From IMG/VR virus record IMGVR_UViG_3300027963_000035, positions 62,001-126,000 of that record: a stretch of 64,000 nucleotides of DNA. One strand, 5' to 3'. Below, piece by piece: positions 31,400-62,536 of the stretch (position 1 is its first letter; each line of letters begins with the position of its first letter). Both the position numbers and the translations under genes were made by a program. The notes below the pieces were generated by a model, which did no database searches, was not told the origin of the DNA, and saw only the letters and a program-made list of their open reading frames with translations.

Positions 31400-32083
31400 A
31401 TGAAAAAATTCATCGAGTGGGTTGAAGCAAACGAATCATTTTTTGGTAATCTTGCAACTGATATTGGTAAGATCGGAGGTATAGTTGCAAATACGATTCA
31501 AGGAAAAGAAAATGATCTACACAATGTTATGCGAGGAGATATTGTAAAAACTCCTCAAGGACAAAGAACTGTTGGTGGAATTAAAAATACAATTGTCAAT
31601 CCTTTGAAATATGGTGCATGTGGCGGAAGATCTTGTAGTAGAGGATCGGCCCCATCCTATGACTTTGACAGTGTGGATACTTCCCAGGGACATCAGCAGC
31701 TAGTTAACATCAAAGAAGCAGCTGTTTTTATCGAACAAAATACATATAACAGATTCATAGAAGAAAGAAAGTTAGAATCTAAAGTAAAATATCTTCCGCA
31801 AGAACTTGCGATACATGTTCATATACAAGGAGACTCTTCAACTGTAGGAAGTATCGAGGCCCTTGTTCAAAAGATTTATAATGAACTTAAAATAGATCCT
31901 TCTGTTAAATACGAACCTAATCTAATAACTGTAGGCCAGCAATTAGTTAAAAATAAAAAATCTGGTATTACAATCAACATACCAGCAGCAAAAACTGGCA
32001 GTTCTAGGCCTATAGCAACGCCGCCAAGTGTTGGTGTTGGTGCCGCCGCAGCCAGAAGACGAGATGCTGCCCGTAGACGATAA
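31400..32083 (+). CDS. Hypothetical protein with capsid-targeting-like N-terminus
   Basis: Starts MKKFIEWVEANE; TATATATA immediately upstream. Confidence 0.6.
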   Translation: MKKFIEWVEANESFFGNLATDIGKIGGIVANTIQGKENDLHNVMRGDIVKTPQGQRTVGGIKNTIVNPLKYGACGGRSCSRGSAPSYDFDSVDTSQGHQQLVNIKEAAVFIEQNTYNRFIEERKLESKVKYLPQELAIHVHIQGDSSTVGSIEALVQKIYNELKIDPSVKYEPNLITVGQQLVKNKKSGITINIPAAKTGSSRPIATPPSVGVGAAAARRRDAARRR

Positions 32084-32117
32084 TTTTTATTCAGAATAAT
32101 CTATATTAAGATTAATC

Positions 32118-33809
32118 ATGAATAAAAATATTACCCTTGTCACAGGTCTTTGGGATCTTAATCGAGAAAGCTTAGACGGCTGGGCACAAAGAAACTTTAG
32201 CGACTACAAGGCCAGATTTTTTGAGATGTTGGAAGTTGATGCTCAAATGTGTATTTGGATTCCAAAATCTCTGGAGCAGGAGGTTTTGGATATAAGAAAG
32301 GATAAGCCAACAAGAATATATTTTAAAGAAAATGAAGACTTTAAAACTTGGAATCCTTTCTTTGATAAAATACAAGAAATAAGAAAAAATGAGGAATGGC
32401 TATCTAGAGCAGGTTGGCTTAGAGAATCCCCTCAAGCAGCGTTGGAATTTTACAATCCAATGATGTTCACAAAAATGTTCATGTTAAATGATTCGTCCAT
32501 TTACAATCCATTTAAATCTGATTATTTCTTTTGGATAGATGGAGGATTGACAAATACAGTCCACCAGGGAACTTTTACACATGATAAGGTTCTCGATAAT
32601 CTTGATAATTATTGTAAAATTCAAAAGAAGTTTGTGCACATAACATATCCATATACCGCTAACGATGAAATACATGGCTTTGAAAGAAATGCTATGGCAA
32701 AATATTGCGGTGTTAATTATGTAGATTATGTTGCAAGAGGGGGATTCTTTGGCGGAAGAAAAGAACTAGTATCTCAAATTAATAGCCTTTATTATGGGGT
32801 TATGGAATCAACCCTCAGAGAAGGGAATATGGGCGCAGATGAGTGTTTATTTACAATACTATGCCATAGGCACCCTGCTTTGATTCATAGATACGAAATA
32901 CCGGGAAACGGTTTAGTTTATCCTTTCTTTGAGAATCTTAAAGAATTTACAAACGAGAAGGTAAAAGAAAATAAATTAAATTGTCAATCAGATACAGATA
33001 ACACTGCGCTTTACGTAATAACTTTTAACAGCCCCAATCAATTTAGAACATTATTAAAAAGCATGGAAGCATACGACTCTGATTTTCTTATAAAACCCAA
33101 GAAAAGATTTCTTCTCAATAACTCAACAGACTTGTCGAAGAATGATGAATACATCAAACTATGTGAAGAATATAATTTCGAGCATATTAAAAAAGATAAC
33201 TTGGGGATATGTGGTGGCCGACAATTCATAGCAGATCATGCGGAACAAAACGAATTTGATTTTCATTGGTTTTTCGAAGATGATATGTTCTTCTATTCAA
33301 ATAAAAATGAACCTCTTTGTAAAAATGGCTTCAATAGAATAACAGAGAATCTTTATTCTAAGTCAATGGAAATAGCAAACAAAGAAAGTTTTGATTTTTT
33401 AAAATTAAACTATACTGAGTTTTTCGGAGACAATGGAACTCAATGGAGTTGGTATAACGTGTCCCAAGATGTCAGAGAAAAGTATTGGCCAAATAATAAA
33501 AAGCTTCCTCAATTAGGAACCGATCCAAATGCTCCTAAGACTGTTTATAATAACATAAAAAGTCATCGAGGAGTTCCGTATACAAATGGAGAAGTTTACT
33601 ATTGCAATTGGCCCCAAGTAGTCTCCAGAGAAGGAAACAAAAAAATGTTTTTAGAAACTACTTGGGCTCATTCATACGAACAAACTTGGATGAGTTATAT
33701 TTACCAAGAAACTAAAAAAGGTAATATTCAAGGTGGACTTTTGCTCATGACACCAACCGAACACAATAGATTCGAACACTACTCGGCAGAATTAAGAAAA
33801 GAATCTTGA
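32118..33809 (+). CDS. HtrL/YibB-like domain fused to a GT-A glycosyltransferase-like domain
   Basis: ITLVTGLWDL, MFTKMFMLND...NPFKSDYFFWIDGG, ARGGFFGG, ADECLFT (HtrL/YibB-like); second domain with WFFEDDMFF DxD-type motif. Confidence 0.65.
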   Translation: MNKNITLVTGLWDLNRESLDGWAQRNFSDYKARFFEMLEVDAQMCIWIPKSLEQEVLDIRKDKPTRIYFKENEDFKTWNPFFDKIQEIRKNEEWLSRAGWLRESPQAALEFYNPMMFTKMFMLNDSSIYNPFKSDYFFWIDGGLTNTVHQGTFTHDKVLDNLDNYCKIQKKFVHITYPYTANDEIHGFERNAMAKYCGVNYVDYVARGGFFGGRKELVSQINSLYYGVMESTLREGNMGADECLFTILCHRHPALIHRYEIPGNGLVYPFFENLKEFTNEKVKENKLNCQSDTDNTALYVITFNSPNQFRTLLKSMEAYDSDFLIKPKKRFLLNNSTDLSKNDEYIKLCEEYNFEHIKKDNLGICGGRQFIADHAEQNEFDFHWFFEDDMFFYSNKNEPLCKNGFNRITENLYSKSMEIANKESFDFLKLNYTEFFGDNGTQWSWYNVSQDVREKYWPNNKKLPQLGTDPNAPKTVYNNIKSHRGVPYTNGEVYYCNWPQVVSREGNKKMFLETTWAHSYEQTWMSYIYQETKKGNIQGGLLLMTPTEHNRFEHYSAELRKES

Positions 33810-33851
33810 AATAAAATATATTAATTGTTATAATACAAAAAAGGAAAAATA

Positions 33852-34715
33852 ATGAGTGAAAAATTATTGACTATCGGAATGGCGACCTATGATGATTATG
33901 ATGGAGTGTATTTCTCTCTCCAAGCACTTCGCATGTATCACGAAGTATGCAACACTGATCAGGTTGAATTTTTAGTCATAGATAATAACCCAAAAGGTAA
34001 ACATGCCGAACCGGTTAAATCTTTTGTTAATAGTTGGGCCAGAGGAAGATATATCCCATATGAAGAAAAGAAAAGCACTGCAGTAAGAAATGAAATATTC
34101 AAGCAAGCAAAGGGCAAGTATACCATATCAATGGATTGCCACGTTTTATTTCAAAAGGGTGCAATAGAAAGTCTTTTGAAATATTATGAACAAAACCCTG
34201 ATTGCAAAAACATAGTTCAGGGACCTCTTCTTTATGACGATTTGCGAAATGAATCTACAAGCTTTTCTCCGGTCTGGAATCATTCCATGTATGGGACCTG
34301 GCACACAGATCATGAAAACTTGAAAAAAGGTGAGCCTTTTGAGATTCTCATGCATGGTCTTGGTGTTTTTTCATGCGAGACCAAGAATTGGGTCGGATTC
34401 AACCAGCACTTTAAGGGATTTGGCGGAGAAGAAGGTTATATTCATGAAAAATTTAGAACACGTGGGGGCAAAGCAATTTGTATCCCTCAATTAAAGTGGG
34501 TTCACCGGTTTGGTAGGCCCGAAGGCGTTAAATACCCTCTTGTTCTAGAGGATAGAATTTGGAATTATTTTGTAGGTTGGCTTGAATTAACATGCAACCC
34601 GGAACATGAAATGATAAAAGGAGCTTACAATCACTTCAAAGATAAGATACCTGCGGGAAGCATAGACAAGATTCTAAACAATGCTAAAAAGCTGGTCCTA
34701 GAATCACCAGGCTGA
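33852..34715 (+). CDS. Glycosyltransferase, GT2-like (GT-A fold)
   Basis: LTIGMATY, EFLVIDNNP, RNEIF..AKGKYTISMDCH, FKGFGGEEG. Confidence 0.82.
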   Translation: MSEKLLTIGMATYDDYDGVYFSLQALRMYHEVCNTDQVEFLVIDNNPKGKHAEPVKSFVNSWARGRYIPYEEKKSTAVRNEIFKQAKGKYTISMDCHVLFQKGAIESLLKYYEQNPDCKNIVQGPLLYDDLRNESTSFSPVWNHSMYGTWHTDHENLKKGEPFEILMHGLGVFSCETKNWVGFNQHFKGFGGEEGYIHEKFRTRGGKAICIPQLKWVHRFGRPEGVKYPLVLEDRIWNYFVGWLELTCNPEHEMIKGAYNHFKDKIPAGSIDKILNNAKKLVLESPG

Positions 34716-35909
34716 TGTTGAATATATCTTTTTCCACTTATTAACTTTGTTATCAGAAAGTCCGCAAGGAGTTGAAACCTGCTGGTAATTATTTCTTTCT
34801 GCTTGATACATGCTGATAAGATGTGCGATATCTTCTACTTCTCTTGATTCCCACCCCGCTGATAGTAAAGCAAATTTAACTTGTTCTATTGCTTTATCTT
34901 TCATCAACCAAGCAGAAGTTAAAAATCTATCATTGTAAGCTTTTTCTGGCACGTCGTCCACAGCTAAATTATCTAAAGGATAAACTGTATTTAAAAGACC
35001 TGTGTTTTTATACATATCCAAATATTTTCTGTCATTTATTTCGGGATTCTCGAGACCAAGAATGTATTCCCTTTTATAGTTTTTATTTAGATCGTTTATT
35101 TTTCCCATAGATTCGATGTGATCTTCAGGGATGTCTTCATTTCCGTATCTGGCTTGCATTCTTATATATCTATGTGCTGTCATTGGGTCATCTTCAACTC
35201 TTTTTGAGAACTTCCCGATAGAGATTATTTGACCATTTTTAAGATGATGAGCACCACCATAAACATCAAGTAGTTCTGTGTTTTCTCCTTCACTATTTTT
35301 AAGTGGAATATACATTGCATTTATTGTAAAGTCTCTTGATGCTGCATCGTCTTCTAAGCTTGATGTTGCTGAAAATCCATCAACATTTAAATTCCTATTC
35401 TTAATGGATTTTGACAAAGGAGATAATTCAAAGTTTTCTCCGTTAATAACAACTGTGAATTCTACGGGCTTATTTTTATCATCCATCCTACTGGCAAAGA
35501 AACTCTTGTTACTTCTCGGAGTCTGAGTTTCCTCAAAACCATTTCCCTTTAAAATTAATTTAATTTCGCTTGATGTGGCATCTGTTACAAGATCATAGTT
35601 TCTCGGGGTCTTTCCTTTTAGATGATCACGAACTGCCCCACCTGTTAAGTAGACGACTTTCTTTTTAAGTTTTGGTTCAACCTCACCATCTGTTTTATCC
35701 ATGGTGGTGTAACCAACACCTATTTGTGGGCTATTTTCGAAAGCTTTTATAAGCAATCTTAAACTGGGGTGGTTGTCTTTATCGATTACGAATGGTTGGA
35801 AATCTTCTACTCCTGGATTCCTAGCCAATTTAACTTTTGAAACTACCGGAATATTGTTCTCTTTGTAGTTGTTCTCTTTGTATAAAACGTAATCTTGAAA
35901 TTTTCCCAT
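34704..35909 (-). CDS. Class II tRNA nucleotidyltransferase/poly(A) polymerase-like protein with altered catalytic motifs
   Basis: GGAVRDHL and RDFTINAMY are present, but the catalytic DxD reads NYD and the EDxxR template reads DDPMT; N-terminus MGKFQDYVLYKE. Confidence 0.8.
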   Translation of the reverse strand: MGKFQDYVLYKENNYKENNIPVVSKVKLARNPGVEDFQPFVIDKDNHPSLRLLIKAFENSPQIGVGYTTMDKTDGEVEPKLKKKVVYLTGGAVRDHLKGKTPRNYDLVTDATSSEIKLILKGNGFEETQTPRSNKSFFASRMDDKNKPVEFTVVINGENFELSPLSKSIKNRNLNVDGFSATSSLEDDAASRDFTINAMYIPLKNSEGENTELLDVYGGAHHLKNGQIISIGKFSKRVEDDPMTAHRYIRMQARYGNEDIPEDHIESMGKINDLNKNYKREYILGLENPEINDRKYLDMYKNTGLLNTVYPLDNLAVDDVPEKAYNDRFLTSAWLMKDKAIEQVKFALLSAGWESREVEDIAHLISMYQAERNNYQQVSTPCGLSDNKVNKWKKIYSTSAW

Positions 35910-35954
35910 TTTTTCACCTTTTGTTATTGTTATATATTGTTTTAATTTATTTTT

Positions 35955-36230
35955 TCACACTGAAGGGCTTTGTATTCCCAATTTATACAATAGATATGAA
36001 GCAACAACCACCCAGAATATCTTGACTATAAAATCAATCAGTTGATCCCAATTTTGTTGAGATCTTGATGTCCTAAGATTAATTCCTTCCATTTTAATTT
36101 CAAATTCTTGAATTTTCTTTGAGAAAGAATCCATCTCCGATGACATTTCTTTTATTTTATCTTCAAAATGCTCGATTTTGTGCTCGATGCGACCCAAGTC
36201 CCCAGATTGATTTTTTCTTTTTTCGACCAT
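35955..36230 (-). CDS. Small coiled-coil protein with a C-terminal transmembrane segment (holin/XhlA-like architecture)
   Basis: Heptad N-terminal region, then hydrophobic LIDFIVKIFWVVVASYLLY. Confidence 0.5.
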   Translation of the reverse strand: MVEKRKNQSGDLGRIEHKIEHFEDKIKEMSSEMDSFSKKIQEFEIKMEGINLRTSRSQQNWDQLIDFIVKIFWVVVASYLLYKLGIQSPSV

Positions 36231-36279
36231 TTTTTGTTATATACTTAAACTTTATAAACTTTCACTAATATATATAGTT

Positions 36280-36753
36280 ATGGAAAATCAAGATCAAATT
36301 ATAATAAGTCAAATAGATGATGCAAAAGAATTAATACCTCAAATGAACGTAGACCTTCCGTCCGTTCAGAATCAAAATGATCTCTCTCACATAGTTTCTG
36401 ATGAAGAATTGGCTGGAGTCTACAGCGAGATTCTAAATAATATAAGAGAAGATAGAAAACAAATAGATGAATTTATAGGTAATTTTGCCGATCTCGTAAT
36501 AAATGAGGGCGACAGCACCAGTGCAAGCAAAGAAGCTCTTGTAAGTTTGGTTAAGATAAAAAGCGATGTAGCGGATAAAATGGCTAAAATGGCAGATTTA
36601 ATGACAAGAATAAAGTTAAAAGATAAGGATACCTTCCCTAAATACTTAGCAGCCAATCAAAATAATACAATAAATATAAATTCAGGAAACAATAAAAGAC
36701 AGTTACTAGAAGCGATAAATAAAGCAAAGAAAGAAGCAAAAGATGAAAATTAA
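36280..36753 (+). CDS. Hypothetical helical protein
   Basis: 157-aa ORF, AATATATATAG directly upstream. Confidence 0.6.
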   Translation: MENQDQIIISQIDDAKELIPQMNVDLPSVQNQNDLSHIVSDEELAGVYSEILNNIREDRKQIDEFIGNFADLVINEGDSTSASKEALVSLVKIKSDVADKMAKMADLMTRIKLKDKDTFPKYLAANQNNTININSGNNKRQLLEAINKAKKEAKDEN

Positions 36754-38053
36754 TACTTTAAATTGGTTTAATGAAGAACTTGGAAATCCAGGCGAAGCCG
36801 CAGGAGGACAGCCTCCTTCCGATGCTACTGGCGGCAATCAGGTGGTGATGCAAAACAACACCTCCGAAGAACCACCACAGGACCAAAATACAGATGGGGC
36901 CCCAGAGGAGACAGAGATAGAACTCCCAAAACAAGATTCTCCGCAAGATTTATCGCAAGAACCACAATCTCCCGACATCCCAGAAGAACAAGAGGAATCA
37001 GAAGATTTTGAAACTTGGAAAATAAGCTATTTTAAAAATCTAGTTAAAGGCGACACAAGTCTTTTATTAAATGATATTCATAAAATCAGGGATTATGATT
37101 TAGAGGCTTATCCAAGAAAGTTTGTTGAAGACAATTTACAGATTCTTTTTTTAAGACAAAATTCTAATATAGAAAAAGCTGGTAAGGATATAAGAAAATC
37201 TATCAGACAGGAATTGGATAACAATAATCCCTCGATGTCAGTTGTCAACCACATCTTCACCTCACTTCAGAGTTATTCTGATTTAACAAATGTATTTATT
37301 AAGCTGAAGGGAACACTGGGCATGAAGAGTGACCTTCACAGAAAATATTTGGCCTCATTATTAGGTGCGGCCCAAGTTGGCAGTGGAGGAAACTCCGAAG
37401 ATATCATTTACAATGAAAGAACATATTCAATAAAGATATCAACAAGATTCAATGAAAAATGGGGAATGATAGATTTAGGAAAATGGTCCTTAAGGGAAGA
37501 CGACCCAGAAAGATTTTTGGAGGATCCCGAACTCAAGAGGCTAGAAGAAGGCAGCCCAGAAGAGAGAGATGTTCTAAGAAGAAGAGTTATCATGGAAGCT
37601 ATTGCAGATAATTTCAAGCAAAGATCTTTCCTCATAAACGTAGTGGGAGTAGATGGAACCGTTTATTTTGTAGGTTTAGATCTCGGAAGCTGTCTAAGCA
37701 CCGCTTATGCAGACGGTAAATTGTCAGTAAGAACAATACAGTCGGAAAACAGTGAGGCTATGATAGATGATGATGGAAATGTTGTTCCGTATGTAGATTT
37801 AAAGATCAAGTATTTATATGAAACAGGGGAGATTGATGAGAATGGATTTCCTAAAAAAGGAGAGTCCGACTTCATTGAGAGGATAGATGGAATTTTATTT
37901 GTGACAGCTCAACTAGATACTCTTAAGCAGGCTGCTGCAAGTTTTCCTGGAGTCATTGTTAAAGAACTTCCCTTTAACGGTAACCCATCAGACTTGAAAG
38001 TCATACAGAGATGTGTGCCCAGTGCAGCTGAAATAATTTTAAGGAACTGCTAA
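36743..38053 (+). CDS. Hypothetical protein with acidic Pro/Glu/Gln-rich N-terminus; possible internal head protein
   Basis: 436 aa; starts MKINTLNWFNEE; about 85 aa low-complexity acidic leader. Confidence 0.6.
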   Translation: MKINTLNWFNEELGNPGEAAGGQPPSDATGGNQVVMQNNTSEEPPQDQNTDGAPEETEIELPKQDSPQDLSQEPQSPDIPEEQEESEDFETWKISYFKNLVKGDTSLLLNDIHKIRDYDLEAYPRKFVEDNLQILFLRQNSNIEKAGKDIRKSIRQELDNNNPSMSVVNHIFTSLQSYSDLTNVFIKLKGTLGMKSDLHRKYLASLLGAAQVGSGGNSEDIIYNERTYSIKISTRFNEKWGMIDLGKWSLREDDPERFLEDPELKRLEEGSPEERDVLRRRVIMEAIADNFKQRSFLINVVGVDGTVYFVGLDLGSCLSTAYADGKLSVRTIQSENSEAMIDDDGNVVPYVDLKIKYLYETGEIDENGFPKKGESDFIERIDGILFVTAQLDTLKQAAASFPGVIVKELPFNGNPSDLKVIQRCVPSAAEIILRNC

Positions 38054-38063
38054 GGGATTAAAA

Positions 38064-38570
38064 ATGTATAAATTTTTTGATTATATTAACCAATCGGAAA
38101 TGCAGGCTCATAGGAAGCTTAAGATAATAAGCGATCTATTGAAGAGTCAAAAGATAAAAAATAAACTATTTGACTCGGACCAAGAACCTCATATTTTTGT
38201 ATTTTCAACTAATCCCGATACTTATTTTCAAGGAGTTAGAGTATATCCTATTGCTAATTCTATAGCATTCAAGGTTCAAAACAAGACGAATACTCATCCT
38301 TATGGAAAGCCATATCTGCTGGACTTTGAGAAAATGTATAATAATCTCATGGGACAAAAAGATGCAACAGAAGATGACTGTGCAAAAAATATAATTGAAT
38401 ACATATGTGCTGAACTTAAAAAATTCTTCACTATGAGTGCCAAATATCAATATGAAAAGAATCCTGAAAACATTAAATTAATGGTCAGATCACAAGGAAC
38501 AGACTACTCAACTAAGTTGTTTGGTGGTGCATCCGGAGATTATTCCTCTAAAGTTTACAATGGGTATTAA
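38064..38570 (+). CDS. Hypothetical protein with capsid-targeting-like N-terminus
   Basis: Starts MYKFFDYINQSE. Confidence 0.6.
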   Translation: MYKFFDYINQSEMQAHRKLKIISDLLKSQKIKNKLFDSDQEPHIFVFSTNPDTYFQGVRVYPIANSIAFKVQNKTNTHPYGKPYLLDFEKMYNNLMGQKDATEDDCAKNIIEYICAELKKFFTMSAKYQYEKNPENIKLMVRSQGTDYSTKLFGGASGDYSSKVYNGY

Positions 38571-38571
38571 A

Positions 38572-38958
38572 ATGATAAGTTTAAATGATTATAAAAATTC
38601 TAAAAGCGTCAAGAGCCTAGTTCAGAAAATGTTTGAGGCACGCCAAGTGGCTCATGTTCACCATTTACAAACTAAAAGTTATAGTCAACATAAAGCCTTA
38701 AATGGATTTTATGATGGTATTCTGGATCTAGCGGATTCTTTTATTGAAACATATCAAGGTCAATATGGAATATTAAACGGATATGGAGATATTAGTATTT
38801 CTGATGTTGATATTGAAGATTATCTCCAAGATTGTGCAAAGATATTCATGCTTGGAAAAGATAGCATGAATGATAAAGACACTCATCTCAAAAATATTAT
38901 GGATGAGGTTGTAGCGCTAACTTACAGAACAATATATAAGATAAAGTATTTAAAGTAA
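38572..38958 (+). CDS. Ferritin-like four-helix protein (DUF5856-like)
   Basis: QVAHVHHLQTKSYSQHKALNGFYD.....ADSFIETYQGQYG...LKNIMDE....TIYKIKYLK; start moved to the ATG just after the upstream stop. Confidence 0.72.
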   Translation: MISLNDYKNSKSVKSLVQKMFEARQVAHVHHLQTKSYSQHKALNGFYDGILDLADSFIETYQGQYGILNGYGDISISDVDIEDYLQDCAKIFMLGKDSMNDKDTHLKNIMDEVVALTYRTIYKIKYLK

Positions 38959-38977
38959 CTCCAATTAAAGGAGAAAG

Positions 38978-39412
38978 ATGGACCTTATACAGGATGTTAA
39001 AAAAGGTAGTTTAGTTTCTTTTAACTACATGTTCCATAAGGCTGGTCATGATCCCAATCCAAATGTAATGGTAACAGCCGCAGACTCTTTTTATGTTTGG
39101 GGAATCAACGTTCATTATTTAACTTTCCCATATATAAGAAATCTATTACAAAAAAATTGTAATAATATTATGTTTGGTTACCCAAATATAAAGAGCGACA
39201 AATTTGTAACTTCGGCTTTTAGACAATACAAGAAAAATGGTATAAGGTCTTTAAAAAAACTTGATTGTGAATTTGTGTTAAATTTATTGGGATCTGCAAG
39301 GGCTCTCACTCCGGGAGAAGTTGAGGCTATAAGAAATACAATTAATGATCAAGTGAATCAGGCCATTAATCAAGTATCTGCGTTGAATCCCAATTCTAAT
39401 ATTTTAAGATAA
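38978..39412 (+). CDS. DNA end protector-like protein (T4 gp2-like)
   Basis: G..V.F.Y...DP.P.V...WGINVHYL...AFRQY...IRS pattern recalls the gp2 G(L/I)NxHYL motif. Confidence 0.6.
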   Translation: MDLIQDVKKGSLVSFNYMFHKAGHDPNPNVMVTAADSFYVWGINVHYLTFPYIRNLLQKNCNNIMFGYPNIKSDKFVTSAFRQYKKNGIRSLKKLDCEFVLNLLGSARALTPGEVEAIRNTINDQVNQAINQVSALNPNSNILR

Positions 39413-42285: not shown

Positions 42286-43012
42286 GATGAAATATATATG
42301 AGTTTAATTTGAATTTTGGCCTCAAAACTTTTCTTTTAACATTTTTAAATTTTAGTAATCTTTCCCAATTATGTGTGTATGTATGGAATATTATCGCATC
42401 CATATATTCAAAGTCATTGATATTTTCTGGTATCTTAACATGATTTCTTTTAAAATAATTTTTATTTATATTATCATCATGAACTATTTGACTCATTAGG
42501 AATTCTTCCCTCACCCATTTATTATATCTCTCAAGCCAAACCCATAGTTCGGGGTGGGTTTCTTTTATTTTATTGAGCTTATCATTAAAGTCTTTGTATA
42601 TTTTTTTGTTAGATCCATTTCTAAACAATAGCACGCCTGAATTAATGGGCTTAAATAATTTAAAGTCTGCACTATAGGCCCACTTGTTCTCACAGCCCAC
42701 AATATCTTCTGGGTATTTATTTATTATTTTTTCTATATCATCAAATATAAAAGTGTCACTATCTATGTAAAATATATTGTCAAAGTCCAAATCGGCTAGA
42801 TATTGTTTGTTTGCTGGGAAGTATTCTGGGTCTATGTTCTTCACATACTTTGTTTCAACCATCAATTCTTCTGGAAACATGGTCTCATCATGTGTGCAAA
42901 AACATATTATTCTTATATTTTTGTTGAATTTTCTAAGCATTTTGATGCTATTAAGAGCCATTTTATGGTAATTTAGATTACCGTTTATTATGTAAACTAC
43001 CACAGAAGTCAT
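42272..43012 (-). CDS. Glycosyltransferase, GT8-like
   Basis: MALNSIKMLRKFN, FYIDSDTFIF (DxD), INSGVLLF, IIFH. Confidence 0.72.
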   Translation of the reverse strand: MTSVVVYIINGNLNYHKMALNSIKMLRKFNKNIRIICFCTHDETMFPEELMVETKYVKNIDPEYFPANKQYLADLDFDNIFYIDSDTFIFDDIEKIINKYPEDIVGCENKWAYSADFKLFKPINSGVLLFRNGSNKKIYKDFNDKLNKIKETHPELWVWLERYNKWVREEFLMSQIVHDDNINKNYFKRNHVKIPENINDFEYMDAIIFHTYTHNWERLLKFKNVKRKVLRPKFKLNSYIFHHEFI

Positions 43013-43033
43013 AAACTAATTATAGTTCAAATT

Positions 43034-47950: not shown

Positions 47951-47981
47951 TATTTTAATTAGTTCTGCATATATAATTATT

Positions 47982-48302
47982 ATGAACTTCTACAAACTAA
48001 ACAAATTGATAAACGAAATGGCTCCCCCTGCTGTTGGACTTCAACAACCTATGGCAACCAATTCTTCCAACGACGTAACCCCAGGACAAAATACACAACA
48101 ACCTGCTCCCGAGGTTCATTCAAAACAGCAAATGAATAAAAACCTAGCTAAGATTTCCAGCAATCTTGGCGAAAAAGGAAATAAATATCAAAAACTGATT
48201 CAGTTTGTGGGAAGAAACCCTGAGATGCTTGCTCTTCTCGATGATTTATTAGGCAACGTCGGTGGCATGCAGGGATCTAAATTTGGAAATATTTACAAGT
48301 AA
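47982..48302 (+). CDS. Hypothetical Gln/Pro-rich protein
   Basis: Starts MNFYKLNKLINE; TATATA upstream. Confidence 0.55.
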   Translation: MNFYKLNKLINEMAPPAVGLQQPMATNSSNDVTPGQNTQQPAPEVHSKQQMNKNLAKISSNLGEKGNKYQKLIQFVGRNPEMLALLDDLLGNVGGMQGSKFGNIYK

Positions 48303-48303: not shown

Positions 48304-48753
48304 TTAATCTCCAAATACTGCACACCAATAAATTTTACCTTCTGCTGAGAAGTACCCAAAACCTATATGTCCATACTCCGATGACATAATATTGGATCTA
48401 TGACCATAGGATCCCATCCAAGCTTTGACTACCTCCTCAGGCGTTCTTTGCCCAAAGGCAATGTTTTCCGCACAAGCATTATGATCCTTTAATAAAACCG
48501 ATATATTGGAATGTCTGAGAGTATTATTATTTGCCATATATTCGGCATGATTCTGGGCATATTTATTTAAACCATCATCTAATTCCAATGATTTTATGCC
48601 TCTACTATTTCTTTCAAAATTATGTAATTTAAGCAATATTAAAGTTACAGAAGCTTTCTGTGACTTTTGTTGTGTCTCTGGAGGTTTTTCTGGAATATTG
48701 GGTTCTTTATAACATCCCGCCAGTAAACAAATCGATAATAACAATTTCTTCAT
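48304..48753 (-). CDS. CAP/SCP-domain lipoprotein
   Basis: Lipobox MKKLLLSICLLAG-C; LHNFER...L...AQNHAEYM...HS, AENIAFG, WMGSYGHRSNIM, IGFG; AGGAGG SD. Confidence 0.88.
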   Translation of the reverse strand: MKKLLLSICLLAGCYKEPNIPEKPPETQQKSQKASVTLILLKLHNFERNSRGIKSLELDDGLNKYAQNHAEYMANNNTLRHSNISVLLKDHNACAENIAFGQRTPEEVVKAWMGSYGHRSNIMSSEYGHIGFGYFSAEGKIYWCAVFGD

Positions 48754-48821: not shown

Positions 48822-49265
48822 CTATTTTTTAATATGTTTTATGTTCCATATGCCACCGTCTCCTGAATCTGGAACAAAATCCTTATTTTTCGTGTAAGAA
48901 GGTTTTCCGGGTATTTTTTTTATGCTCCAGGGCTTTCCTTCTCCATATTTTGCCGAGAACCCATCTTTATTACTTTTTGGCTCAGAGGATTCGCCACCTA
49001 TGCCCTTTATACTCCACAAACCAGACTCGCCGCTATTTAATTTTGTATTTGACTCCCCAGGTATATGAGTTATATCAAACGATGTCTTATCTGTTGAATT
49101 GTAGATTCTTTCGTCTACGGACAGGTAAAAGATTGCATCCGCACTTCTTGTGAGGTACCACTGGGGCGGGTATAATCCTATTCCACCGTATCCCAATGGA
49201 TACAAACCAGTTTTGCCGCCAGGATTAGAACCTTCACTTATAAGCCAATCTTTAAAATTTAACAT
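48822..49265 (-). CDS. Hypothetical protein with capsid-targeting-like N-terminus and short internal repeats
   Basis: Starts MLNFKDWLISE; repeats FDITHIPG / WSIKGIGG / WSIKKIPG / WNIKHIKK. Confidence 0.6.
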   Translation of the reverse strand: MLNFKDWLISEGSNPGGKTGLYPLGYGGIGLYPPQWYLTRSADAIFYLSVDERIYNSTDKTSFDITHIPGESNTKLNSGESGLWSIKGIGGESSEPKSNKDGFSAKYGEGKPWSIKKIPGKPSYTKNKDFVPDSGDGGIWNIKHIKK

Positions 49266-49633: not shown

Positions 49634-49653
49634 CTAATAATATATAGTATATC
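49634..49653. promoter_or_regulatory. Putative bidirectional TATATA promoter element
   Basis: 20-nt spacer ctaataatatatagtatatc between divergent ATGs at 49633 (-) and 49654 (+); no SD on either side. Confidence 0.45.
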
Positions 49654-50472
49654 ATGAATTTTAAACTTTGGCTTGTCGAATCTAGTCTTAGGGATTTACT
49701 TAAGGATGTCCCTCAAAATCCCGAACACCACGCAGAGGGCGATGTTTTTAAACATACTAGAATGGTTAGAAACTCTCTTGATATTGCTAAAAGACTACTT
49801 AAGAAAGAGCAAGGAATTTTTCCCTTTTCAAAAATAAACTTTGATCTGTCTGATAAAGAGGAAAAGATTCTTAAGATTTGTGCTTGGCTTCACGATATTG
49901 GAAAAGCAAGTGCGACAACTGTAGACGGCATTCATTGGAAAGATGCCGCCGACACATCCGGTAAGATATCAGCACACCAGCACGATCAATCCCACCATTA
50001 CGAGCCAATGATAGATAAGCTTGGTTCAATGTGGAGTCCTATGTTATCGGCACTATCCCCTGATGAAATACAAGATATATACTTCTGTATTGATTATCAC
50101 ATGAGTCTTGGAAATGGATCTTTTTCCAAGAAGGTGTCTTCTGTTGTTTTCGATCAAGATGGAAATTATAAAAATGAAAGAAAAGTTAAACTTCTTCTTT
50201 ATATAATAACAATGGATTGGACTGGAAGAATATCTGGGAATAAGGGCGGTGAAAATGGGGCGCTAGACGCCATACAAGGTTTTAAAAATTCTGCGTATAA
50301 ATTATTAGAAAAAAATAAAATTATTAATAGCAGAAAGAAAACTTCCATAGATGATCCAAAAGAATTTATCTTATCCTTAAAAGGCAAGCCGATAGAAGTT
50401 ATCAAAAAAGCATTTATTAATAAATTCGGTAGAGAAATATCTGATGATGAGATTTCTTTAGTTGATTTTTAA
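49654..50472 (+). CDS. Stand-alone HD-domain phosphohydrolase of the CCA-enzyme/Pnkp-associated type
   Basis: QNPEHHAEGDVFKHT, AWLHDIGKA, HH, YHM, MD..GR; N-terminus MNFKLWLVES. Confidence 0.82.
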   Translation: MNFKLWLVESSLRDLLKDVPQNPEHHAEGDVFKHTRMVRNSLDIAKRLLKKEQGIFPFSKINFDLSDKEEKILKICAWLHDIGKASATTVDGIHWKDAADTSGKISAHQHDQSHHYEPMIDKLGSMWSPMLSALSPDEIQDIYFCIDYHMSLGNGSFSKKVSSVVFDQDGNYKNERKVKLLLYIITMDWTGRISGNKGGENGALDAIQGFKNSAYKLLEKNKIINSRKKTSIDDPKEFILSLKGKPIEVIKKAFINKFGREISDDEISLVDF

Positions 50473-50931: not shown

Positions 50932-51018
50932 TTCTTTAAGTTTCTTTTTGGTACGGTATCTTGAATATCCATCCTGTGAGGAGTAGTATTTCTCCACACA
51001 CTATACCAAGGTGCCGCA

Positions 51019-52646: not shown

Positions 52647-52689
52647 TTAATAACATAGTAATTTTAGATGAAAACAATATATATCCTTA

Positions 52690-54078: not shown

Positions 54079-54111
54079 TTTTATGTGCTTCACTTTGAGG
54101 TTAGAACTAAA

Positions 54112-57096: not shown

Positions 57097-57099
57097 TAA

Positions 57100-57735
57100 T
57101 TATTTGAAAAAAGCAACGATAGAGCAGCGGGCATTGGCCCCAGAATCTTCGTCTACTCTATTTATTTGATGCCAAACCCCACCTCTTGTTGCAACAATTC
57201 TGTTGGGCTTTGGTTGAATATAATACCCACATGCAACATAGTTCATTATTTTATCTGTCCACCAAGTCTCTAAAGGTCCGCCTACATTTTCCTTTTTATA
57301 CTCTATGTTTGGGGTCTCGGCCAACATTAACTCGCCACCCCATCCTGCTCCCCAATAGGGATGAGTATAAAATATAACTGCTGCTGTATAGCCAGTGTCG
57401 TTGTGCCAATTTATTTTAGTTCCTCTTCCATAGATATATGCTCTTAAAAAGACTTCTTTCCATTTGCCAAAAATTTCTGGATGGTTATTATTAATTTCGT
57501 TTATTTTTTCATAAACCTTATCAAGTGGGTTTTTGAATGGGTAATCTTTAGCATTATATTCCTTACTCCCCATGGGATTCCCGTCAGTCAATTTCCAAAC
57601 TTTCATGAATCCATTTGAGTTTATAGAAGAATAATCTATGGTTTGAAACCAATCCCACATAACTTTAAACTCTTCTGGAGTGAGGACGTTATCGTAGATT
57701 ACGAATTTATCTTCATTTTGTAATATTTTATCCAT
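57100..57735 (-). CDS. 2OG-Fe(II) oxygenase, prolyl-4-hydroxylase-like
   Basis: HxD (WHND), WGGEL, PKPNRIV, distal His (WHQI) and RxS (RCS). Confidence 0.85.
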   Translation of the reverse strand: MDKILQNEDKFVIYDNVLTPEEFKVMWDWFQTIDYSSINSNGFMKVWKLTDGNPMGSKEYNAKDYPFKNPLDKVYEKINEINNNHPEIFGKWKEVFLRAYIYGRGTKINWHNDTGYTAAVIFYTHPYWGAGWGGELMLAETPNIEYKKENVGGPLETWWTDKIMNYVACGYYIQPKPNRIVATRGGVWHQINRVDEDSGANARCSIVAFFK

Positions 57736-57790
57736 TCTTTAATTATAGATTATTTTTAGTTCAAATCAATATATATTAAAAAGGATAAAA

Positions 57791-58141
57791 ATGAACGATA
57801 TATTAAAACTCGCCGGTTTAACTGAACAAGTTGAAAAATTTAATAATTTCTCAGAAAAAAGATTTGATGGTGCAAAAAAGATATCTGAGATGGCTGAAGA
57901 AAAAGGTGGTCCCGCCCTTCTTACACATTATCACTTTGCCGTCAAACTTCCCTACTACAAAAAAGCCTTAGAAGGAAAGATGGACTTTGAAAAAAGCAAA
58001 GAAGAATATAAAAAGCTTTGTGAAAAACTTCATTCAATGATGGATAAAATAGAAGATGTAAACCAAAAAACATTCCAGGAACTACTTGGTAAAATGGAAG
58101 TTTTAGGAGAACTATTAATACAAGAAAAAAATTCTAAATGA
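57791..58141 (+). CDS. Hypothetical helical protein
   Basis: 116-aa ORF, AAGGA SD and AATATATATT upstream. Confidence 0.6.
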   Translation: MNDILKLAGLTEQVEKFNNFSEKRFDGAKKISEMAEEKGGPALLTHYHFAVKLPYYKKALEGKMDFEKSKEEYKKLCEKLHSMMDKIEDVNQKTFQELLGKMEVLGELLIQEKNSK

Positions 58142-58959
58142 ACTTCAAAGATTTTATCAACGAGTCGCCTGTAACCAATTTTGAACTAATGGGTCAATGG
58201 GGACCTGAAGCTAAGAGAAAATACGGATATAACACACAAGACTCGGGAATACTAGAAAATCCCAAGGCGGTTGAAAAAATACATAAGCACTGGAGCAACA
58301 GCAAGAGTAATTTTGAATTTTACTTTTTAAGAAGTTTTAAGGCAAGTAAACATGTCGAAGTCGGTCAAGTGACCCCGGAATGGGTTAAAGAGAATTTAGA
58401 AGTTGATATAAAGCCAAAAGAAGATTCTATAACCGTTATATTCACAAATAATACTGGGGCAGAAAAAATACCTATGACAGCTTGGTCCATGGCACATAGA
58501 TTAGGCCATGCGATTAGACGTGATAAAACTTTTGAAAGACATTTTAATGAAGAAGTCAGAAGAGACTTCGATGAAATATTACAATATGTATATGGAATAA
58601 GCACAGACAGATATAACACCCTGCGGCCAGACTATGAGAAGCAGAGAAAAGCAATCTTCTTAGCTGTAGGCACTATGAAAAGTGCAAGAAATAATATCCT
58701 GAGGAATAGTGATGAGTTCGTATATGAACTATTGGCCCAGTATATTATATCAGGTAAAATAACATTCAATGACCTTCCTAAAAGCCTCATAATAGACAGA
58801 AAGATGGCCTGGGGCAGACCCAACTATAGAACAAAGAATATGGTAGATGAAACAGCATACAGAGAATATAATGAAATGCTACACAATAATGCCGTTAAAT
58901 ACGAATATAATCTTGATACTATCTTCAATGGTCTTGAGGGATTGATGTTTGTAATGTGA
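58138..58959 (+). CDS. Hypothetical protein with capsid-targeting-like N-terminus and zincin-like HRxxH motif
   Basis: Starts MNFKDFINES; WSMAHRLGHAI followed later by YELLAQY. Confidence 0.62.
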   Translation: MNFKDFINESPVTNFELMGQWGPEAKRKYGYNTQDSGILENPKAVEKIHKHWSNSKSNFEFYFLRSFKASKHVEVGQVTPEWVKENLEVDIKPKEDSITVIFTNNTGAEKIPMTAWSMAHRLGHAIRRDKTFERHFNEEVRRDFDEILQYVYGISTDRYNTLRPDYEKQRKAIFLAVGTMKSARNNILRNSDEFVYELLAQYIISGKITFNDLPKSLIIDRKMAWGRPNYRTKNMVDETAYREYNEMLHNNAVKYEYNLDTIFNGLEGLMFVM

Positions 58960-59377
58960 TATCAGAGGTGCAATAAGGACATTTTTTCGCTTCAGGGTCT
59001 ATTTCTTTGCAACAATACTCACATTTTTTACCTTTTATGGGCTCTTCTTTTCTTTTTAATCTACCCAATCCCTTTTGACAAATTAAATACAAAATAAAAG
59101 AAATTAAAATAAAATCTACAAGCACACCTATCATTCTTCCCACTTCAAACTCAAGTCCGTTAAACGGAATGAATGCCCAGTTTCTCCATCCATCTCCTGT
59201 CTTTGAAACTAAAAACTTAAAAATAGGCATTAATAGATAGTCAGATATTCCATTTATAACTTTATTGAAAGAATTTCCAAGTATAACCCCAACAGCAAAC
59301 TTCATCATATCTTCACGAAATGCGAAGTCTCTATATTCCTTTATATTTTTACTATTGAGAAAATCTCTTTCATCCAT
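58925..59377 (-). CDS. mscL: Large-conductance mechanosensitive channel with C-terminal Zn ribbon
   Basis: FAFREDMMKFAVGVILGNSFNKVI....DYLLMP (TM1), G..IG.LVDFILISFILYL (TM2), CEYCCKEI...AKKCPYCTS; start moved to ATG 59377. Confidence 0.85.
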   Translation of the reverse strand: MDERDFLNSKNIKEYRDFAFREDMMKFAVGVILGNSFNKVINGISDYLLMPIFKFLVSKTGDGWRNWAFIPFNGLEFEVGRMIGVLVDFILISFILYLICQKGLGRLKRKEEPIKGKKCEYCCKEIDPEAKKCPYCTSDITLQTSIPQDH

Positions 59378-59395
59378 ACTACTATATATTAACAT

Positions 59396-59476
59396 ACAAC
59401 ATTGTTTGGTGTTCCGGGTATGGGAACAAAGGTGTTGACCTTGGCAGGAAAGCAGAAATGCTTTCCTGTTTTTTTT
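59396..59476 (+). ncRNA. Candidate small structured RNA (about 80 nt)
   Basis: Long hairpin CAACATT...TGTTCC-loop-GGAACA...GGTGTTG followed by a strong plus-strand terminator inside a divergent intergenic region; no RNA family recognised. Confidence 0.3.
59445..59476 (+). terminator. Intrinsic terminator
   Basis: Perfect 10-bp stem CAGGAAAGCA / TGCTTTCCTG, GAAA loop, then 8 T. Confidence 0.8.
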
Positions 59477-59489
59477 ACTATACTATGTT

Positions 59490-60428
59490 ATGAAAACCTT
59501 AATTTATTTAATTATATTCTTACTAACCTCCTCTAGTCTATTTGCTGAAGTCAAAGAAACAGGATTATCTTTTGATTATGGTGAAAGTAATCTCGCAGGG
59601 TTGTTTACAATGACTAATGAAAATGGTAGGCTGAAAAACCTTGAATTAATAGACGGAGTTTTTTCTGATGGTAAACTTGGGTTCAAATCAGAGAAATATC
59701 ATAACGTTAGTTCCACAGAGATATATAAAAAAATATCGGAGTTAACAGGCAAGTTGAGTGATAATGGAACTCTATTGCTTTACTTGAATAGTCACGGAGG
59801 AGGTAGTAATCAAAATTTTGCAATGACAGCTGCTGGAGGAAGTTTTAAATTTAGCAAAGCTTTAAAAGCAATAGCATCTGTGAAAAAAGTAAAGAGATTG
59901 GTTGTTCTTATAGATACATGCCATGCTGCAGGAGGGATACAAGAAGGATTTGATGTTAATGGTGAATTACTTAGAAATCTCCAGAGTGCAAAACCTGCAT
60001 CGGTACTTCCTGAACTTCCAAAAGAGTATAGGAGCAACACAAGACCATTTATTGGAATATTTGATATTCTGAAGAATAACGATGTAGACTATGGCGAGGA
60101 CAGCGGAGCATATGAAGAAGCTCTTATTATAAGCTCGTCTAGCGTAGAAGATTTATCCATAAGAGGTGTTTTTGCAAGTAGGCTAAAAACAACTTTCGAT
60201 AAAGTCAAAAATAACAGAGATGTAACAGTGGGACAATTTTTGAAAATGTTTGCAGATAGTCACTCTCAATCCGGACAACAACCATATTATAAAGTCGTAC
60301 CTGATAAAAGTATGTTAAATGAATTTTTATTCAGAAACTACCCAGCAGAAGAAATACCAATATATGACTATAAAACAAGAGAAAAAATCCCAGGTAAGGG
60401 AAATATTTTAATACCTAGTCAAGAATAG
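59490..60428 (+). CDS. Exported caspase-fold (clan CD, C14/C13-like) cysteine peptidase
   Basis: Signal peptide MKTLIYLIIFLLTSSSLFA; His-Gly in LLLYLNSHGG and Cys in VLIDTCHAAG; IISSS...S...G.F later. Confidence 0.75.
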   Translation: MKTLIYLIIFLLTSSSLFAEVKETGLSFDYGESNLAGLFTMTNENGRLKNLELIDGVFSDGKLGFKSEKYHNVSSTEIYKKISELTGKLSDNGTLLLYLNSHGGGSNQNFAMTAAGGSFKFSKALKAIASVKKVKRLVVLIDTCHAAGGIQEGFDVNGELLRNLQSAKPASVLPELPKEYRSNTRPFIGIFDILKNNDVDYGEDSGAYEEALIISSSSVEDLSIRGVFASRLKTTFDKVKNNRDVTVGQFLKMFADSHSQSGQQPYYKVVPDKSMLNEFLFRNYPAEEIPIYDYKTREKIPGKGNILIPSQE

Positions 60429-61058
60429 TTTAAAAACTTTTTTATATTTATTGTGCAGTTCTTTTTTTGTTCTGACGCTCTTGCATAACTCAGCATCCAT
60501 TTCTGTAGCCATATATGCTTGAATTTCATCTTTAATAACTTTGGGATTATATCCAAGGTCGGTTAAACATTTTTTCATTTTATTGAAATCTTTTTTACTT
60601 ATTGTGTTGGTTATATCGTCCATCTGATTTTTATAAGCCTCATCAGAATAATAAAATGCATGACAAAGCTCATGTCTAAATGTGACGCTGTTAAGTGATC
60701 TGATTCCTATAATATATCCTATTTCTTTTTTGTTTATACTTGATATTTTTCTTAGTATTTCATTCATTATCAAATCATATGGAGTCTCAACAACACTTTT
60801 TTTCTGACAGTCTACAGCGGTCTTTAAAGGTAAATTAAAACCAGACCAGTCAGAAGCATAGGTGAAACTGTCCCCGTGCTTTTTACTATACCATCTATAA
60901 TAATCAAAAATAGAGAATGCCTTGCCGGCGAACTCTTCATTTTTTGATTCATAATATTCTTGGACACGGCAGAATAAATTTGCTCTATCGTAATTATCTT
61001 TTATAATTACCGCAAAAATTCTTGGATATATTTGTTTTAAACTATATTCAATATTCAT
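60408..61058 (-). CDS. Hypothetical phage protein with HExxH motif
   Basis: FRHELCHAFY and later DEIQAY; LFCRVQEYYES...WSGFN.P N-terminal part. Confidence 0.6.
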   Translation of the reverse strand: MNIEYSLKQIYPRIFAVIIKDNYDRANLFCRVQEYYESKNEEFAGKAFSIFDYYRWYSKKHGDSFTYASDWSGFNLPLKTAVDCQKKSVVETPYDLIMNEILRKISSINKKEIGYIIGIRSLNSVTFRHELCHAFYYSDEAYKNQMDDITNTISKKDFNKMKKCLTDLGYNPKVIKDEIQAYMATEMDAELCKSVRTKKELHNKYKKVFKLFLTRY

Positions 61059-61094
61059 GAATATAATTCTATATGTTTATTGACAAACAGTCAA

Positions 61095-61298
61095 CTAGTA
61101 AAATATATTTCGGTATACAAACCAGAAGAATTGTATTATGGAGCATATTGCAGATATTACCATGATCATAGTAATTACCCCAATTGTGCATCCTCCTGCT
61201 ATTACAAATGATTTCTTCTTCTGATGATTTAAATACAAGTAAGAAAAAAGACAAGAAAAGAAAACTATTATCGGTAACGTGTAAATTAAATTATTCAT
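61095..61298 (-). CDS. Small membrane protein (two hydrophobic segments)
   Basis: 67 aa, two long hydrophobic stretches separated by KKK; co-oriented with neighbours. Confidence 0.45.
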   Translation of the reverse strand: MNNLIYTLPIIVFFSCLFSYLYLNHQKKKSFVIAGGCTIGVITMIMVISAICSIIQFFWFVYRNIFY

Positions 61299-61303
61299 AT
61301 AAA

Positions 61304-62536
61304 TTATGTATTATTTCTAAAATTAGAATATTCATCATCATTCATTCTGTCGCTTATTTCTTTTCCTTTTAAATGCATATAATCTTCTGATTTTGTGACT
61401 TGCTTATACATTAAAAAATATTTGATCTCTCTCTGTAGACCACTTATCTTACCAAATTCCATAAAAGATTTTTTAAGCTTGTCGCTTAAATTATCCCTCA
61501 TCCTTATCATTCTTATGATATTAGATTTATTTAAATCATAAGCTACTTTTAGAATAAACGCAACTGTGTCTGCTATTTCATTTGAATATTTTAATTCATT
61601 TAGTTTTGATCTTAATTTATTTGGATCATTATTTTTAAAAATTAGACTCATCACCGCAATTGGATCGTGAGAATCTATCTCTGAGCTTAAATCAACATTC
61701 AATCCGGGAAAAATTGTTGACAATAAATCTAACGCCTTATAGTTCATAATATAATTTTTAACATTCTTGCATTTACTCAACCCCGACAAAAATTCATTTG
61801 CAATTCTTTCTCCACTAACACCTTTTAAATCTTTGAATTTCTCAACTGCACTTATTGTTTTTTGATCTAAATGACTTGTAATAATGTCATCGTTGAATCT
61901 AGAGAAGAATCTAACAAGTCTCAACACTCTAAGTTTATCCTCTCTGAATCTTTCCTCGGGATCACCAACACTTCTAACAGAAAGATTCTTTATATCTTTG
62001 AATCCCTCGCCCTCTCCTTTGTGATCGAGGTTATAATCACGGATTTGCTTATCTTTTAAATCATAAAAGAGGGCGTTAATGTTGAGATCTCTGCGTTTTG
62101 CATCCAAACCCGGGCTGCTATATGAGACTTTATCGGGTCTTCTTCCATCTCCTTTTTCTGGATCGTAAAACTCGGTCCTGAATGTTGCTATTTCGAATTC
62201 TTTTCCATTTATAATGGCGCTTATTACACCAAAACTTTCTCCTTTTGGAAAAACTTTTATTCCATTCTCTACTGCTTCTTTAGAACTCAGTATTTTGATC
62301 ACCTGATCCGGTGTTTGATCCGTTGCCAGGTCAACATCTTTCGGATTATACGGAACATGCTTTTGATGAAATATGTGATACAAGTAATCTCTTATTGCGC
62401 CACCAACTGCGTATAATTTTGCTCCAAATTTTTTAAATATATCACTTAAAATGTCTACTTCTGATGGCATTGGTATGGAAGCACTCATTGCATGGTACTG
62501 TTCTTCCTCTTTTAGTAGCCAATTTTTGAATTTCAT
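61304..62536 (-). CDS. cca: CCA-adding tRNA nucleotidyltransferase (class II), catalytic motifs intact, no HD domain
   Basis: GGAIRD...KDVDLAT (DxD), FEIATFR, RRDLNINALFY, RFREDKLRVLRLVRF (EDxxR), VSGERI; start moved to MKFKNWLLKEE at 62536. CCA vs poly(A) specificity cannot be proven from sequence alone. Confidence 0.82.
   Translation of the reverse strand: MKFKNWLLKEEEQYHAMSASIPMPSEVDILSDIFKKFGAKLYAVGGAIRDYLYHIFHQKHVPYNPKDVDLATDQTPDQVIKILSSKEAVENGIKVFPKGESFGVISAIINGKEFEIATFRTEFYDPEKGDGRRPDKVSYSSPGLDAKRRDLNINALFYDLKDKQIRDYNLDHKGEGEGFKDIKNLSVRSVGDPEERFREDKLRVLRLVRFFSRFNDDIITSHLDQKTISAVEKFKDLKGVSGERIANEFLSGLSKCKNVKNYIMNYKALDLLSTIFPGLNVDLSSEIDSHDPIAVMSLIFKNNDPNKLRSKLNELKYSNEIADTVAFILKVAYDLNKSNIIRMIRMRDNLSDKLKKSFMEFGKISGLQREIKYFLMYKQVTKSEDYMHLKGKEISDRMNDDEYSNFRNNT

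Follow-up and report, generated by a model that had tools for sequence, protein, structure and literature searches.

A candidate T4-type capsid-targeting sequence on enzymes and small proteins of an uncultured huge phage

Positions 62,001 to 126,000 of the IMG/VR virus record IMGVR_UViG_3300027963_000035, a stretch of 64,000 nucleotides from a freshwater phage, referred to here as the window, encode around ten proteins that open with a similar short N-terminus. With a probability of roughly 0.7, this shared start is a capsid-targeting sequence (CTS) of the type known from phage T4. The finding would place a T4-type tag in a deep-branching clade of uncultured huge phages, with a predicted cargo much larger and more enzymatic than that of T4. 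For the window, the predicted cargo comprises two CCA/poly(A)-type nucleotidyltransferases, an HD-like protein, an SNF2 ATPase, a nuclease-like protein, and several small proteins. A preliminary description of the DNA first noted how closely these N-termini resemble the T4 signal, and every check proposed there that is feasible in silico came out as the interpretation predicts.

In the proposed mechanism, the tag would form a short amphipathic helix with the consensus M-K-[TSN]-F-x-[EQD]-[WFY]-[LIVF]-x(0-3)-E, which docks the protein on the scaffolding core of the prohead. The gp21-family prohead protease of the phage would then cut after the Glu of a hydrophobic-x-Glu site, freeing the mature protein inside the head; in T4, exchanging the Glu for Asp stops processing while targeting is kept. 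In the head the protein would be stored alongside the DNA, and the two would probably be ejected together.

The nearest record to the window is an uncultured 595-kb phage, LR756511.1, with a baseplate J protein 44% and a capsid protein 75% identical. Exact-protein look-ups walking left reached L047, a JGI contig with 0 mismatches to the window over 11,550 bp, and the joined region of the phage genome (window plus left part) spans 92 kb and 95 open reading frames (ORFs). All ten tagged N-termini listed in the preliminary description are present in the window at their coordinates, and its pattern was used as a strict regular expression, ^M.{1,2}F.{2}[WFY][LIVM].{0,3}E. This matches the start of 8/57 ORFs in the window (31400+, 35909-, 38064+, 42285-, 49265-, 49654+, 58138+, and 62536-). 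The expectation is 0.03 matches when based on internal frequency or composition and 0.06 when based on shuffling, and none of 5000 shuffles gave more than 2. Every strict match has F or Y at position 3-4, followed by W, F, or Y three residues on. Over the 92 kb, 11 of the 95 ORFs match against 0.13 expected, and in LR756511.1 the count is 37 of 1087 against ~4. Inside proteins the motif is ~100-fold rarer than at residue 1. The predicted enrichment is borne out as a strong N-terminal excess in all three data sets. The tagged and possibly tagged genes of the window are as follows.

31400..32083 (+): tagged gene, 227 aa; tag MKKFIEWVEANE (nt 31400-31435), strict match; TATATA box 9-11 nt 5' of the ATG; no Pfam and no PHROG match to the product
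34704..35909 (-): nucleotidyltransferase of PolyA_pol/CCA type, 401 aa; tag MGKFQDYVLYKE (nt 35874-35909); PF01743 from residue 86 (E=1e-19); tagged orthologues in syntenic blocks of L025 and LR756511.1
36743..38053 (+): 436-aa protein with restriction-endonuclease-like hints (nearest named ESM-Atlas clusters are restriction endonucleases, at low score); weaker tag MKINTLNWFNEE
38064..38570 (+): tagged gene, 168 aa; tag MYKFFDYINQSE, strict match; orthologues tagged as MLEFKEFIDKKE in LR756511.1 and MRFSSFLD... in L025
39370..42285 (-): SNF2-family ATPase/helicase, 971 aa; tag MSLFKNYVENQE; PF00176 and PF00271 from residue 470; phrog_62; TATATA box 13 nt 5' of the ATG
47982..48302 (+): basic protein, 106 aa, pI 9.5; doubtful tag MNFYKLNKLINE with L-I-N-E at residues 9-12; TATATA box at -12
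48822..49265 (-): Gly/Pro/Tyr-rich protein, 147 aa; tag MLNFKDWLISE, followed by a conserved GSNPG...KTGLYP core
49654..50472 (+): HD-like protein, 272 aa; tag MNFKLWLVE; resembles the HD domains of CCA enzymes in ESM-Atlas features and structure
58138..58959 (+): tagged gene, 273 aa; tag MNFKDFINE, strict match; no Pfam, PHROG, or significant PDB match to the product
61304..62536 (-): nucleotidyltransferase of CCA-adding type, 410 aa; tag MKFKNWLLKEE; PF01743 (E=3e-22)
492..1550 (+): primase, uncertain member; tag-like N-terminus MSDIFDNFKKWAE; primase profile starts at residue 21

Two of the ten fail the strict pattern, 36743+ and 47982+. The former is probably a true variant of the tag, as its orthologues in two other phages (L025 and LR756511.1) retain L-x-x-W-[FL]-x-E, while 47982 is doubtful as a carrier. 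At 62536(-) the tag begins at an internal ATG within a longer TTG-started ORF; close homologues open directly with the tag, which supports the internal start. Tag-like motifs also occur in unexpected places or registers, in the primase, whose orthologue in LR756511.1 (MVDFDSFVDWCE) fits the strict pattern, and in a protein of 92 aa (5541-5819, -) encoded at the end of the tail block, which carries FNKWIKQD at residues 15-22 and has an orthologue with DFRKWMSKQ.

The minus strand at 5.5-31.3 kb forms a baseplate and tail block. None of its genes is tagged, nor are the glycosyltransferases or the membrane and lipoprotein ORFs, in agreement with the claim that these classes lack the motif. The carriers had also been called unrelated, which holds for all others once the first 15 residues are removed, but not for the two PolyA_pol-type nucleotidyltransferases, which are 25% identical to each other. 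Pfam likewise confirms the enzyme labels given to these two proteins and to the SNF2 ATPase, whereas the label of HD hydrolase for 49654 is only moderately supported, its product having no Pfam match and no significant PDB sequence match. A Sec or lipoprotein signal peptide was ruled out, as the tags are amphipathic and acidic with no hydrophobic core of ~10 or more residues. Genuine signal-like N-termini do occur in the window (48304-48753, 59490-60428, and 62688-63317) and are altogether unlike the tags.

The likeness to the T4 signal holds when the tags are compared with the fetched T4 genes. IPII and IPIII begin with MKTYQEFIAE, IPI with MKTFKEF..., gp24 with MAKINELLRE, and Alt with MELITELFDE. 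The first 10 residues of T4 IPIII are enough for encapsidation, residues 4 and 7 serving targeting and residues 8 and 10 processing, and gp21 cleaves after L/I-x-E (PMC9026906). When the phage-derived pattern was run on 131 T4 ORFs, IPII and IPIII were the sole matches. N-termini of the window phage and LR756511.1 were then picked on F-x-x-aromatic alone. The unselected positions proved T4-like, with K at 2, T/S/N at 3, and E/Q/D at 6. The aromatic is followed by a hydrophobic residue in 75% (30% in the background), and a Glu stands 2-5 residues further on in 67% (24% in the background). Elsewhere in the phage genome, on the left contig, tags such as MKTFNEFIEQ and MKTFYEWLNE are nearly identical to those of T4. 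The literature searched contained no description of a CTS-like tag beyond the T-even phages and no paper that names LR756511.

On comparative evidence, the tag is portable between proteins and is gained or lost independently of its cargo. The 147-aa protein has a family of 199 metagenomic homologues; of the 120 that were listed, 114 begin with the tag. In an alignment of 59 of these homologues F4 is invariant, W7 is at least 90% conserved, and E11 is invariant. The spacer between the tag and the strongly conserved core, GSNPGxKTGLYPLGYGGIGLYPPQWY, varies by 0-12 residues but always closes in [LIVF]-x-E. A variable spacer ending in a fixed [LIVF]-x-E with an invariant Glu has the appearance expected of a retained cleavage site. 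AlphaFold2 modelling of the family from 59 sequences gave a pLDDT of 51, with nothing usable past a helix at residues 4-10. In the nucleotidyltransferase family (150 representatives), some members are tagged and others open directly at a conserved IPxPxEV segment. Six representatives (P0247, P0250, P0258, P0279, P0288, and P0358) are fusions in the order tag, HD, nucleotidyltransferase. In the window the HD-like protein (49654-50472, +) and the nucleotidyltransferase (61304-62536, -) are separate genes 11 kb apart, each with its own tag. One proposed check was whether bacterial homologues of the enzymes lack the extension. Solved cellular CCA enzymes do lack it and align only from residue 28-34 of the 62536(-) protein. 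Homologues in the nucleotidyltransferase family at large occur both with and without it.

The gp21-like protease that a T4-type tag would call for is encoded on the same genome. The head genes lie ~20-23 kb left of the window in the order 595-aa head-operon gene, PF03420 protease, 298-aa scaffold-like gene, and PF07068 capsid protein. The protease (Peptidase_S77; L047:7338-8027, -) is 32% identical to T4 gp21 (E=1e-24), and the GELxHP and SSRG motifs of the two line up. The capsid protein is 30% identical to T4 gp23 (E=5e-41) and has three L/I-x-E sites within its first 48 residues; after LR756511.1, the nearest GenBank capsid protein is 36% identical. The left 28 kb holds about nine additional tagged genes, including three consecutive small basic proteins (pI 9.1-9.5) just past the capsid gene, downstream of the head operon. 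Eight other loci show the same layout, in which a capsid, scaffold, and protease of the same clade stand beside a tagged gene. LR756511.1 also has T4-type portal, protease, and capsid genes, and its tagged set includes a C39 peptidase, a 2H phosphodiesterase, and a 1076-aa protein whose gene lies a short way downstream of the capsid gene. A second gp21-like protease, which has diverged (E=6e-7 to T4 gp21), lies far from its head module at 242240-243133 (-) and recalls the protease paralogue reported for SPN3US.

The tag extends beyond these two phages. In an IMG/VR scan MNFKDW[LF] occurred at 20 loci, and at several of these the motif truly starts a gene and neighbouring genes are tagged. A scan for MKTFxEW[LIM] gave at least 120 stretches, 80 of which were analysed; in these, 53 of 85 matches are true ORF starts, and 48 additional tagged ORFs were found among 1104 neighbouring ORFs. 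The clade defined by the capsid protein comprises >7,800 protein clusters with contigs of up to 673 kb. Among the carriers, L017 has a seeming P-loop kinase and a Nudix protein, both judged from N-terminal motifs alone.

A different setting was observed in high-GC phages (62-72% GC; L050:829-3477, L083:7345-9561, L106:316-2226, and L107:385-2586), in which MKTF[EA]EWL follows its own Shine-Dalgarno sequence. Here it opens a scaffold-like stretch of ~200 residues fused to an HK97/Mu-type capsid domain (PF25209/Mu-gpT). The scaffold-capsid part is an in-frame nested gene preceded by an N-terminal part that weakly matches Peptidase_S78, and the long ORF of L050 itself starts with MTFAEW. By our own estimate ~0.03 chance matches of this heptad are expected in DNA of this kind. 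The occurrence of the motif at a scaffold-like segment of capsid proteins provides a link to the procapsid interior that is independent of T4.

One tagged nucleotidyltransferase belongs to a syntenic block found in three distant phages (window 34704-39412, L025:12776-19242, and L027:1763-14200). Its order is tagged nucleotidyltransferase, coiled-coil protein, ~150-aa protein, nuclease-like protein of ~430 aa, tagged protein of ~165 aa, and another of ~150 aa, and in two of the three phages it continues directly into a giant tail-module protein of 1640-1994 aa. The conserved block at 34.7-39.4 kb was considered as a head module and ruled out, as the 436-aa protein looks nuclease-like and not capsid-like.

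Many tagged genes also share an upstream box. TATATA is 10.7-fold enriched upstream of genes and lies 8-15 nt 5' of the ATG in tagged genes and a tail-fibre gene, mostly with no Shine-Dalgarno sequence. Examples of the boxes in the window are:

31389-31394, 42296-42301, 47970-47975, 49641-49646, and 15789-15794: TATATA boxes, ending 4-9 nt before the ATG

The box varies between phages, being TATATA in the window, CTAAATA in LR756511.1, and CTAGATAGGGC in others (L060, L081, L099, L114, and L115). In LR756511.1, TA[AC]ATA or TATATA stands 8-16 nt 5' of the ATG in 26/37 tagged and 53/1050 untagged genes (odds ratio 44, p=2e-23); baseplate J, the 1640-aa tail protein, and several more loosely tagged genes are among the 53 counted as untagged. 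Transcripts starting from a box so near the ATG would be leaderless. The late promoter of T4 is TATAAATA, which the box common to tagged, tail, and baseplate genes resembles, and the box may be a T4-late-like promoter. A phmmer search with T4 gp55, gp33, and gp45 returned nothing in LR756511.1 or the 92-kb region; as no gp55 homologue was found, the term 'late' is provisional.

Several observations weigh against a CTS. The phage for which docking, cleavage, presence in virions, and injection are predicted has no cultured relative. Carriers make up ~15-20% of ORFs in the 92 kb, far beyond the handful in T4, and include odd cargo such as tRNA-end enzymes and possibly a primase. In 4/10 window tags the Glu has no L, I, or V at P3, the AlphaFold2 helix for the tag is of low confidence (pLDDT ~60), and the late-promoter reading is an analogy for which phmmer found no gp55, gp33, or gp45 homologue in LR756511.1. 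Four other explanations were considered. Tagged proteins may enter the prohead as internal, scaffold-like, or DNA-condensing parts, or be degraded there, and not be delivered as working enzymes. The T4 core proteins gp22, gp67, and gp68 end as fragments in this way and are not delivered (PMC9026906), many tagged proteins are small and basic with no function assigned, and the motif also opens the scaffold-like segments of capsid proteins. This explanation is nonetheless unlikely, given that a number of carriers are enzymes of full size whose catalytic domains are intact. Cleavage at the one predicted site near residue 10-12 would not break these up, as it does not in T4 Alt and the internal proteins (IPs). 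It could also be that the tag docks proteins to another hub of the phage instead of to the prohead, for example an enzyme complex or compartment of the late phase. The tag-like primase N-terminus in two phages would fit such a hub, as would the many RNA-end repair carriers that could cooperate in it (CCA nucleotidyltransferase, HD, 2H phosphodiesterase, and the kinase-like and Nudix-like proteins of L017). However, this leaves the near-identity to the tested T4 signal unexplained, together with the hydrophobic-x-Glu kept before mature domains, the clustering by head genes, and the motif on capsid scaffold segments, and it appears rather improbable.

The conserved start could further be an mRNA-level constraint on translating leaderless late transcripts, and not a protein signal. 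Most tagged genes have a promoter-like box close enough to the ATG for a leaderless mRNA, and the tag codons are slightly A-rich, with GAA at 87% compared to 69% genome-wide. Yet untagged genes have the same box, and the regions upstream of tagged genes differ, the tag standing behind a TATATA box, behind a Shine-Dalgarno leader, or in genes overlapping the preceding one. The F codons of the tag match genome usage, 12 different codons serve the hydrophobic position, and the tag is kept in phages from 25% to 72% GC. The T4 signal was moreover mapped at the amino-acid level via amber suppression (PMC9026906). A nucleotide-level signal was ruled out by the differing upstream regions and the codon usage, and a constraint on the mRNA is very improbable. 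Chance, AT-rich composition bias, or hidden paralogy would draw on the fact that K, N, F, I, L, and E are frequent at N-termini in a 35% GC genome. No more than 0.13 matches are expected from the shuffles and internal controls, against the 8-11 observed, and the two nucleotidyltransferases are the only paralogues. These controls and the comparison with the tag removed refute both chance or composition and hidden paralogy, whose probability is close to nil.

The genome around the tagged genes has further features of note. The window is densely coding under table 11 (the standard bacterial code) at ~35% GC. Its source record is 251 kb long and has a twin of 323 kb at 99% identity. With 25 kb as megablast query, GenBank phages yielded zero nucleotide matches, and tblastn against GenBank phages with the 272-aa, the 147-aa, and a 797-aa (L005) tagged protein also gave zero matches, with no cultured carrier. 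The sole hint at a host is indirect and comes from bS21-encoding freshwater phages of up to 331 kb, which are possibly related and have Bacteroidetes as predicted hosts (PMC9723584). Between the replication and tail genes lies an actin-like protein (3233-4288, -), with PF25216 (Volactin) in the Pfam table of the matching JGI contig. A glycosyltransferase cluster with a 2OG-Fe(II) oxygenase (32118-34715, 44443-46728, and 57100-57735) encodes an HtrL_YibB-like protein with a weak TET-associated glycosyltransferase match, a GT2 enzyme, and a GT34-like domain fused to a SAM methyltransferase. This cluster may serve glycan or DNA hypermodification. The window also encodes an MscL-type mechanosensitive channel homologue (58925-59395, -; PF01741, E=4e-18) and a CAP-domain lipoprotein with a lipobox (48304-48753, -).

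Proteins carried into the cell set the first minutes of infection and are usually known only through virion proteomics of cultured phages. If the T4 label works alike here, an N-terminal motif would turn thousands of metagenomic genomes into testable lists of packaged proteins. It would flag enzymes that may act before phage gene expression, including CCA-adding and HD enzymes, the SNF2 ATPase, nucleases, 2H phosphodiesterase, C39 peptidase, and phosphatase. The T4 signal would also be far older and wider spread than the T-even phages, and such tags could offer a new way of filling phage heads with foreign proteins. A broader proposal, tentative and with somewhat less than an even chance of being correct, is that M-K-T-F-x-E-W-L is an ancient general address for the inside of the procapsid well beyond T4. 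It would be carried by dozens of cargo proteins per genome in the uncultured 250-670-kb clade and by the HK97/Mu-type scaffold segments of high-GC phages. In that case the injected proteome could be read from metagenomes, and tRNA-end repair, nuclease, helicase, and peptidase activities could pre-empt host defences.

Among known systems, the T4 IPs are the closest to the tagged proteins. Both have a short N-terminal propeptide (10-19 residues; M-K-T-[YF]-x-E-F-[IT]..E), with aromatics at 4 and 7 and, in many of the phage tags, also the aliphatic residue at 8 and the Glu at ~10, placed on unrelated cargo, and the phage genome shares with T4 a gp21-family protease and a gp23-type head. The small basic tagged proteins by the capsid gene are likewise reminiscent of the IPs. 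The phage tags differ in favouring Trp as the second aromatic, in a spacing from the Met that shifts by one residue, and in a Glu placed 1-5 residues past the hydrophobic pair. Dozens of carriers per genome, many of them enzymes, also contrast with the handful in T4. T4 Alt is a packaged and injected enzyme and provides a precedent for enzyme cargo, although none of the tagged proteins examined was recognised as an ADP-ribosyltransferase of the Alt kind. The Alt and gp24 propeptides resemble the phage tags in having ten residues, with hydrophobics at 4, 7, and 8 and a Glu at 10, but carry aliphatics where the phage tags have aromatics.

Propeptides are also known from the giant phages phiKZ, 201phi2-1, and SPN3US, in which many proteins of the head and of the ejected set are cleaved after Glu by a protease related to gp21 and the propeptides are thought to direct proteins into proheads (PMC5694885). 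They are mostly 80-130 residues long with the motif A/S/G-x-E, and no common short N-terminal motif has been reported (PMC5694885). The phage tag, by contrast, is short, common to many proteins, and T4-like. A long propeptide of the phiKZ/SPN3US type was ruled out for it, since conserved domains begin 12-30 residues in and P3 is mostly L, I, or V. The Dar system of P1 packages the helicase/methylase DarB via Hdf and DarA. It resembles the window in its large helicase-type enzyme, which is head-borne and acts on entry in P1, and which in the window is the tagged SNF2 protein of phrog_62, a family that presumably includes DarB. P1 relies on dedicated adaptor proteins for this, and not on a shared cleavable N-terminal tag. 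Finally, the delta domain of HK97-type phages and the nested protease-scaffold-capsid genes of Mu-type phages likewise place an N-terminal scaffold segment inside the procapsid, where the prohead protease cuts it off. In the high-GC phages the motif heads such a scaffold of ~200 residues fused to the capsid protein, with no Glu directly after it, and is not a tag on separate cargo.

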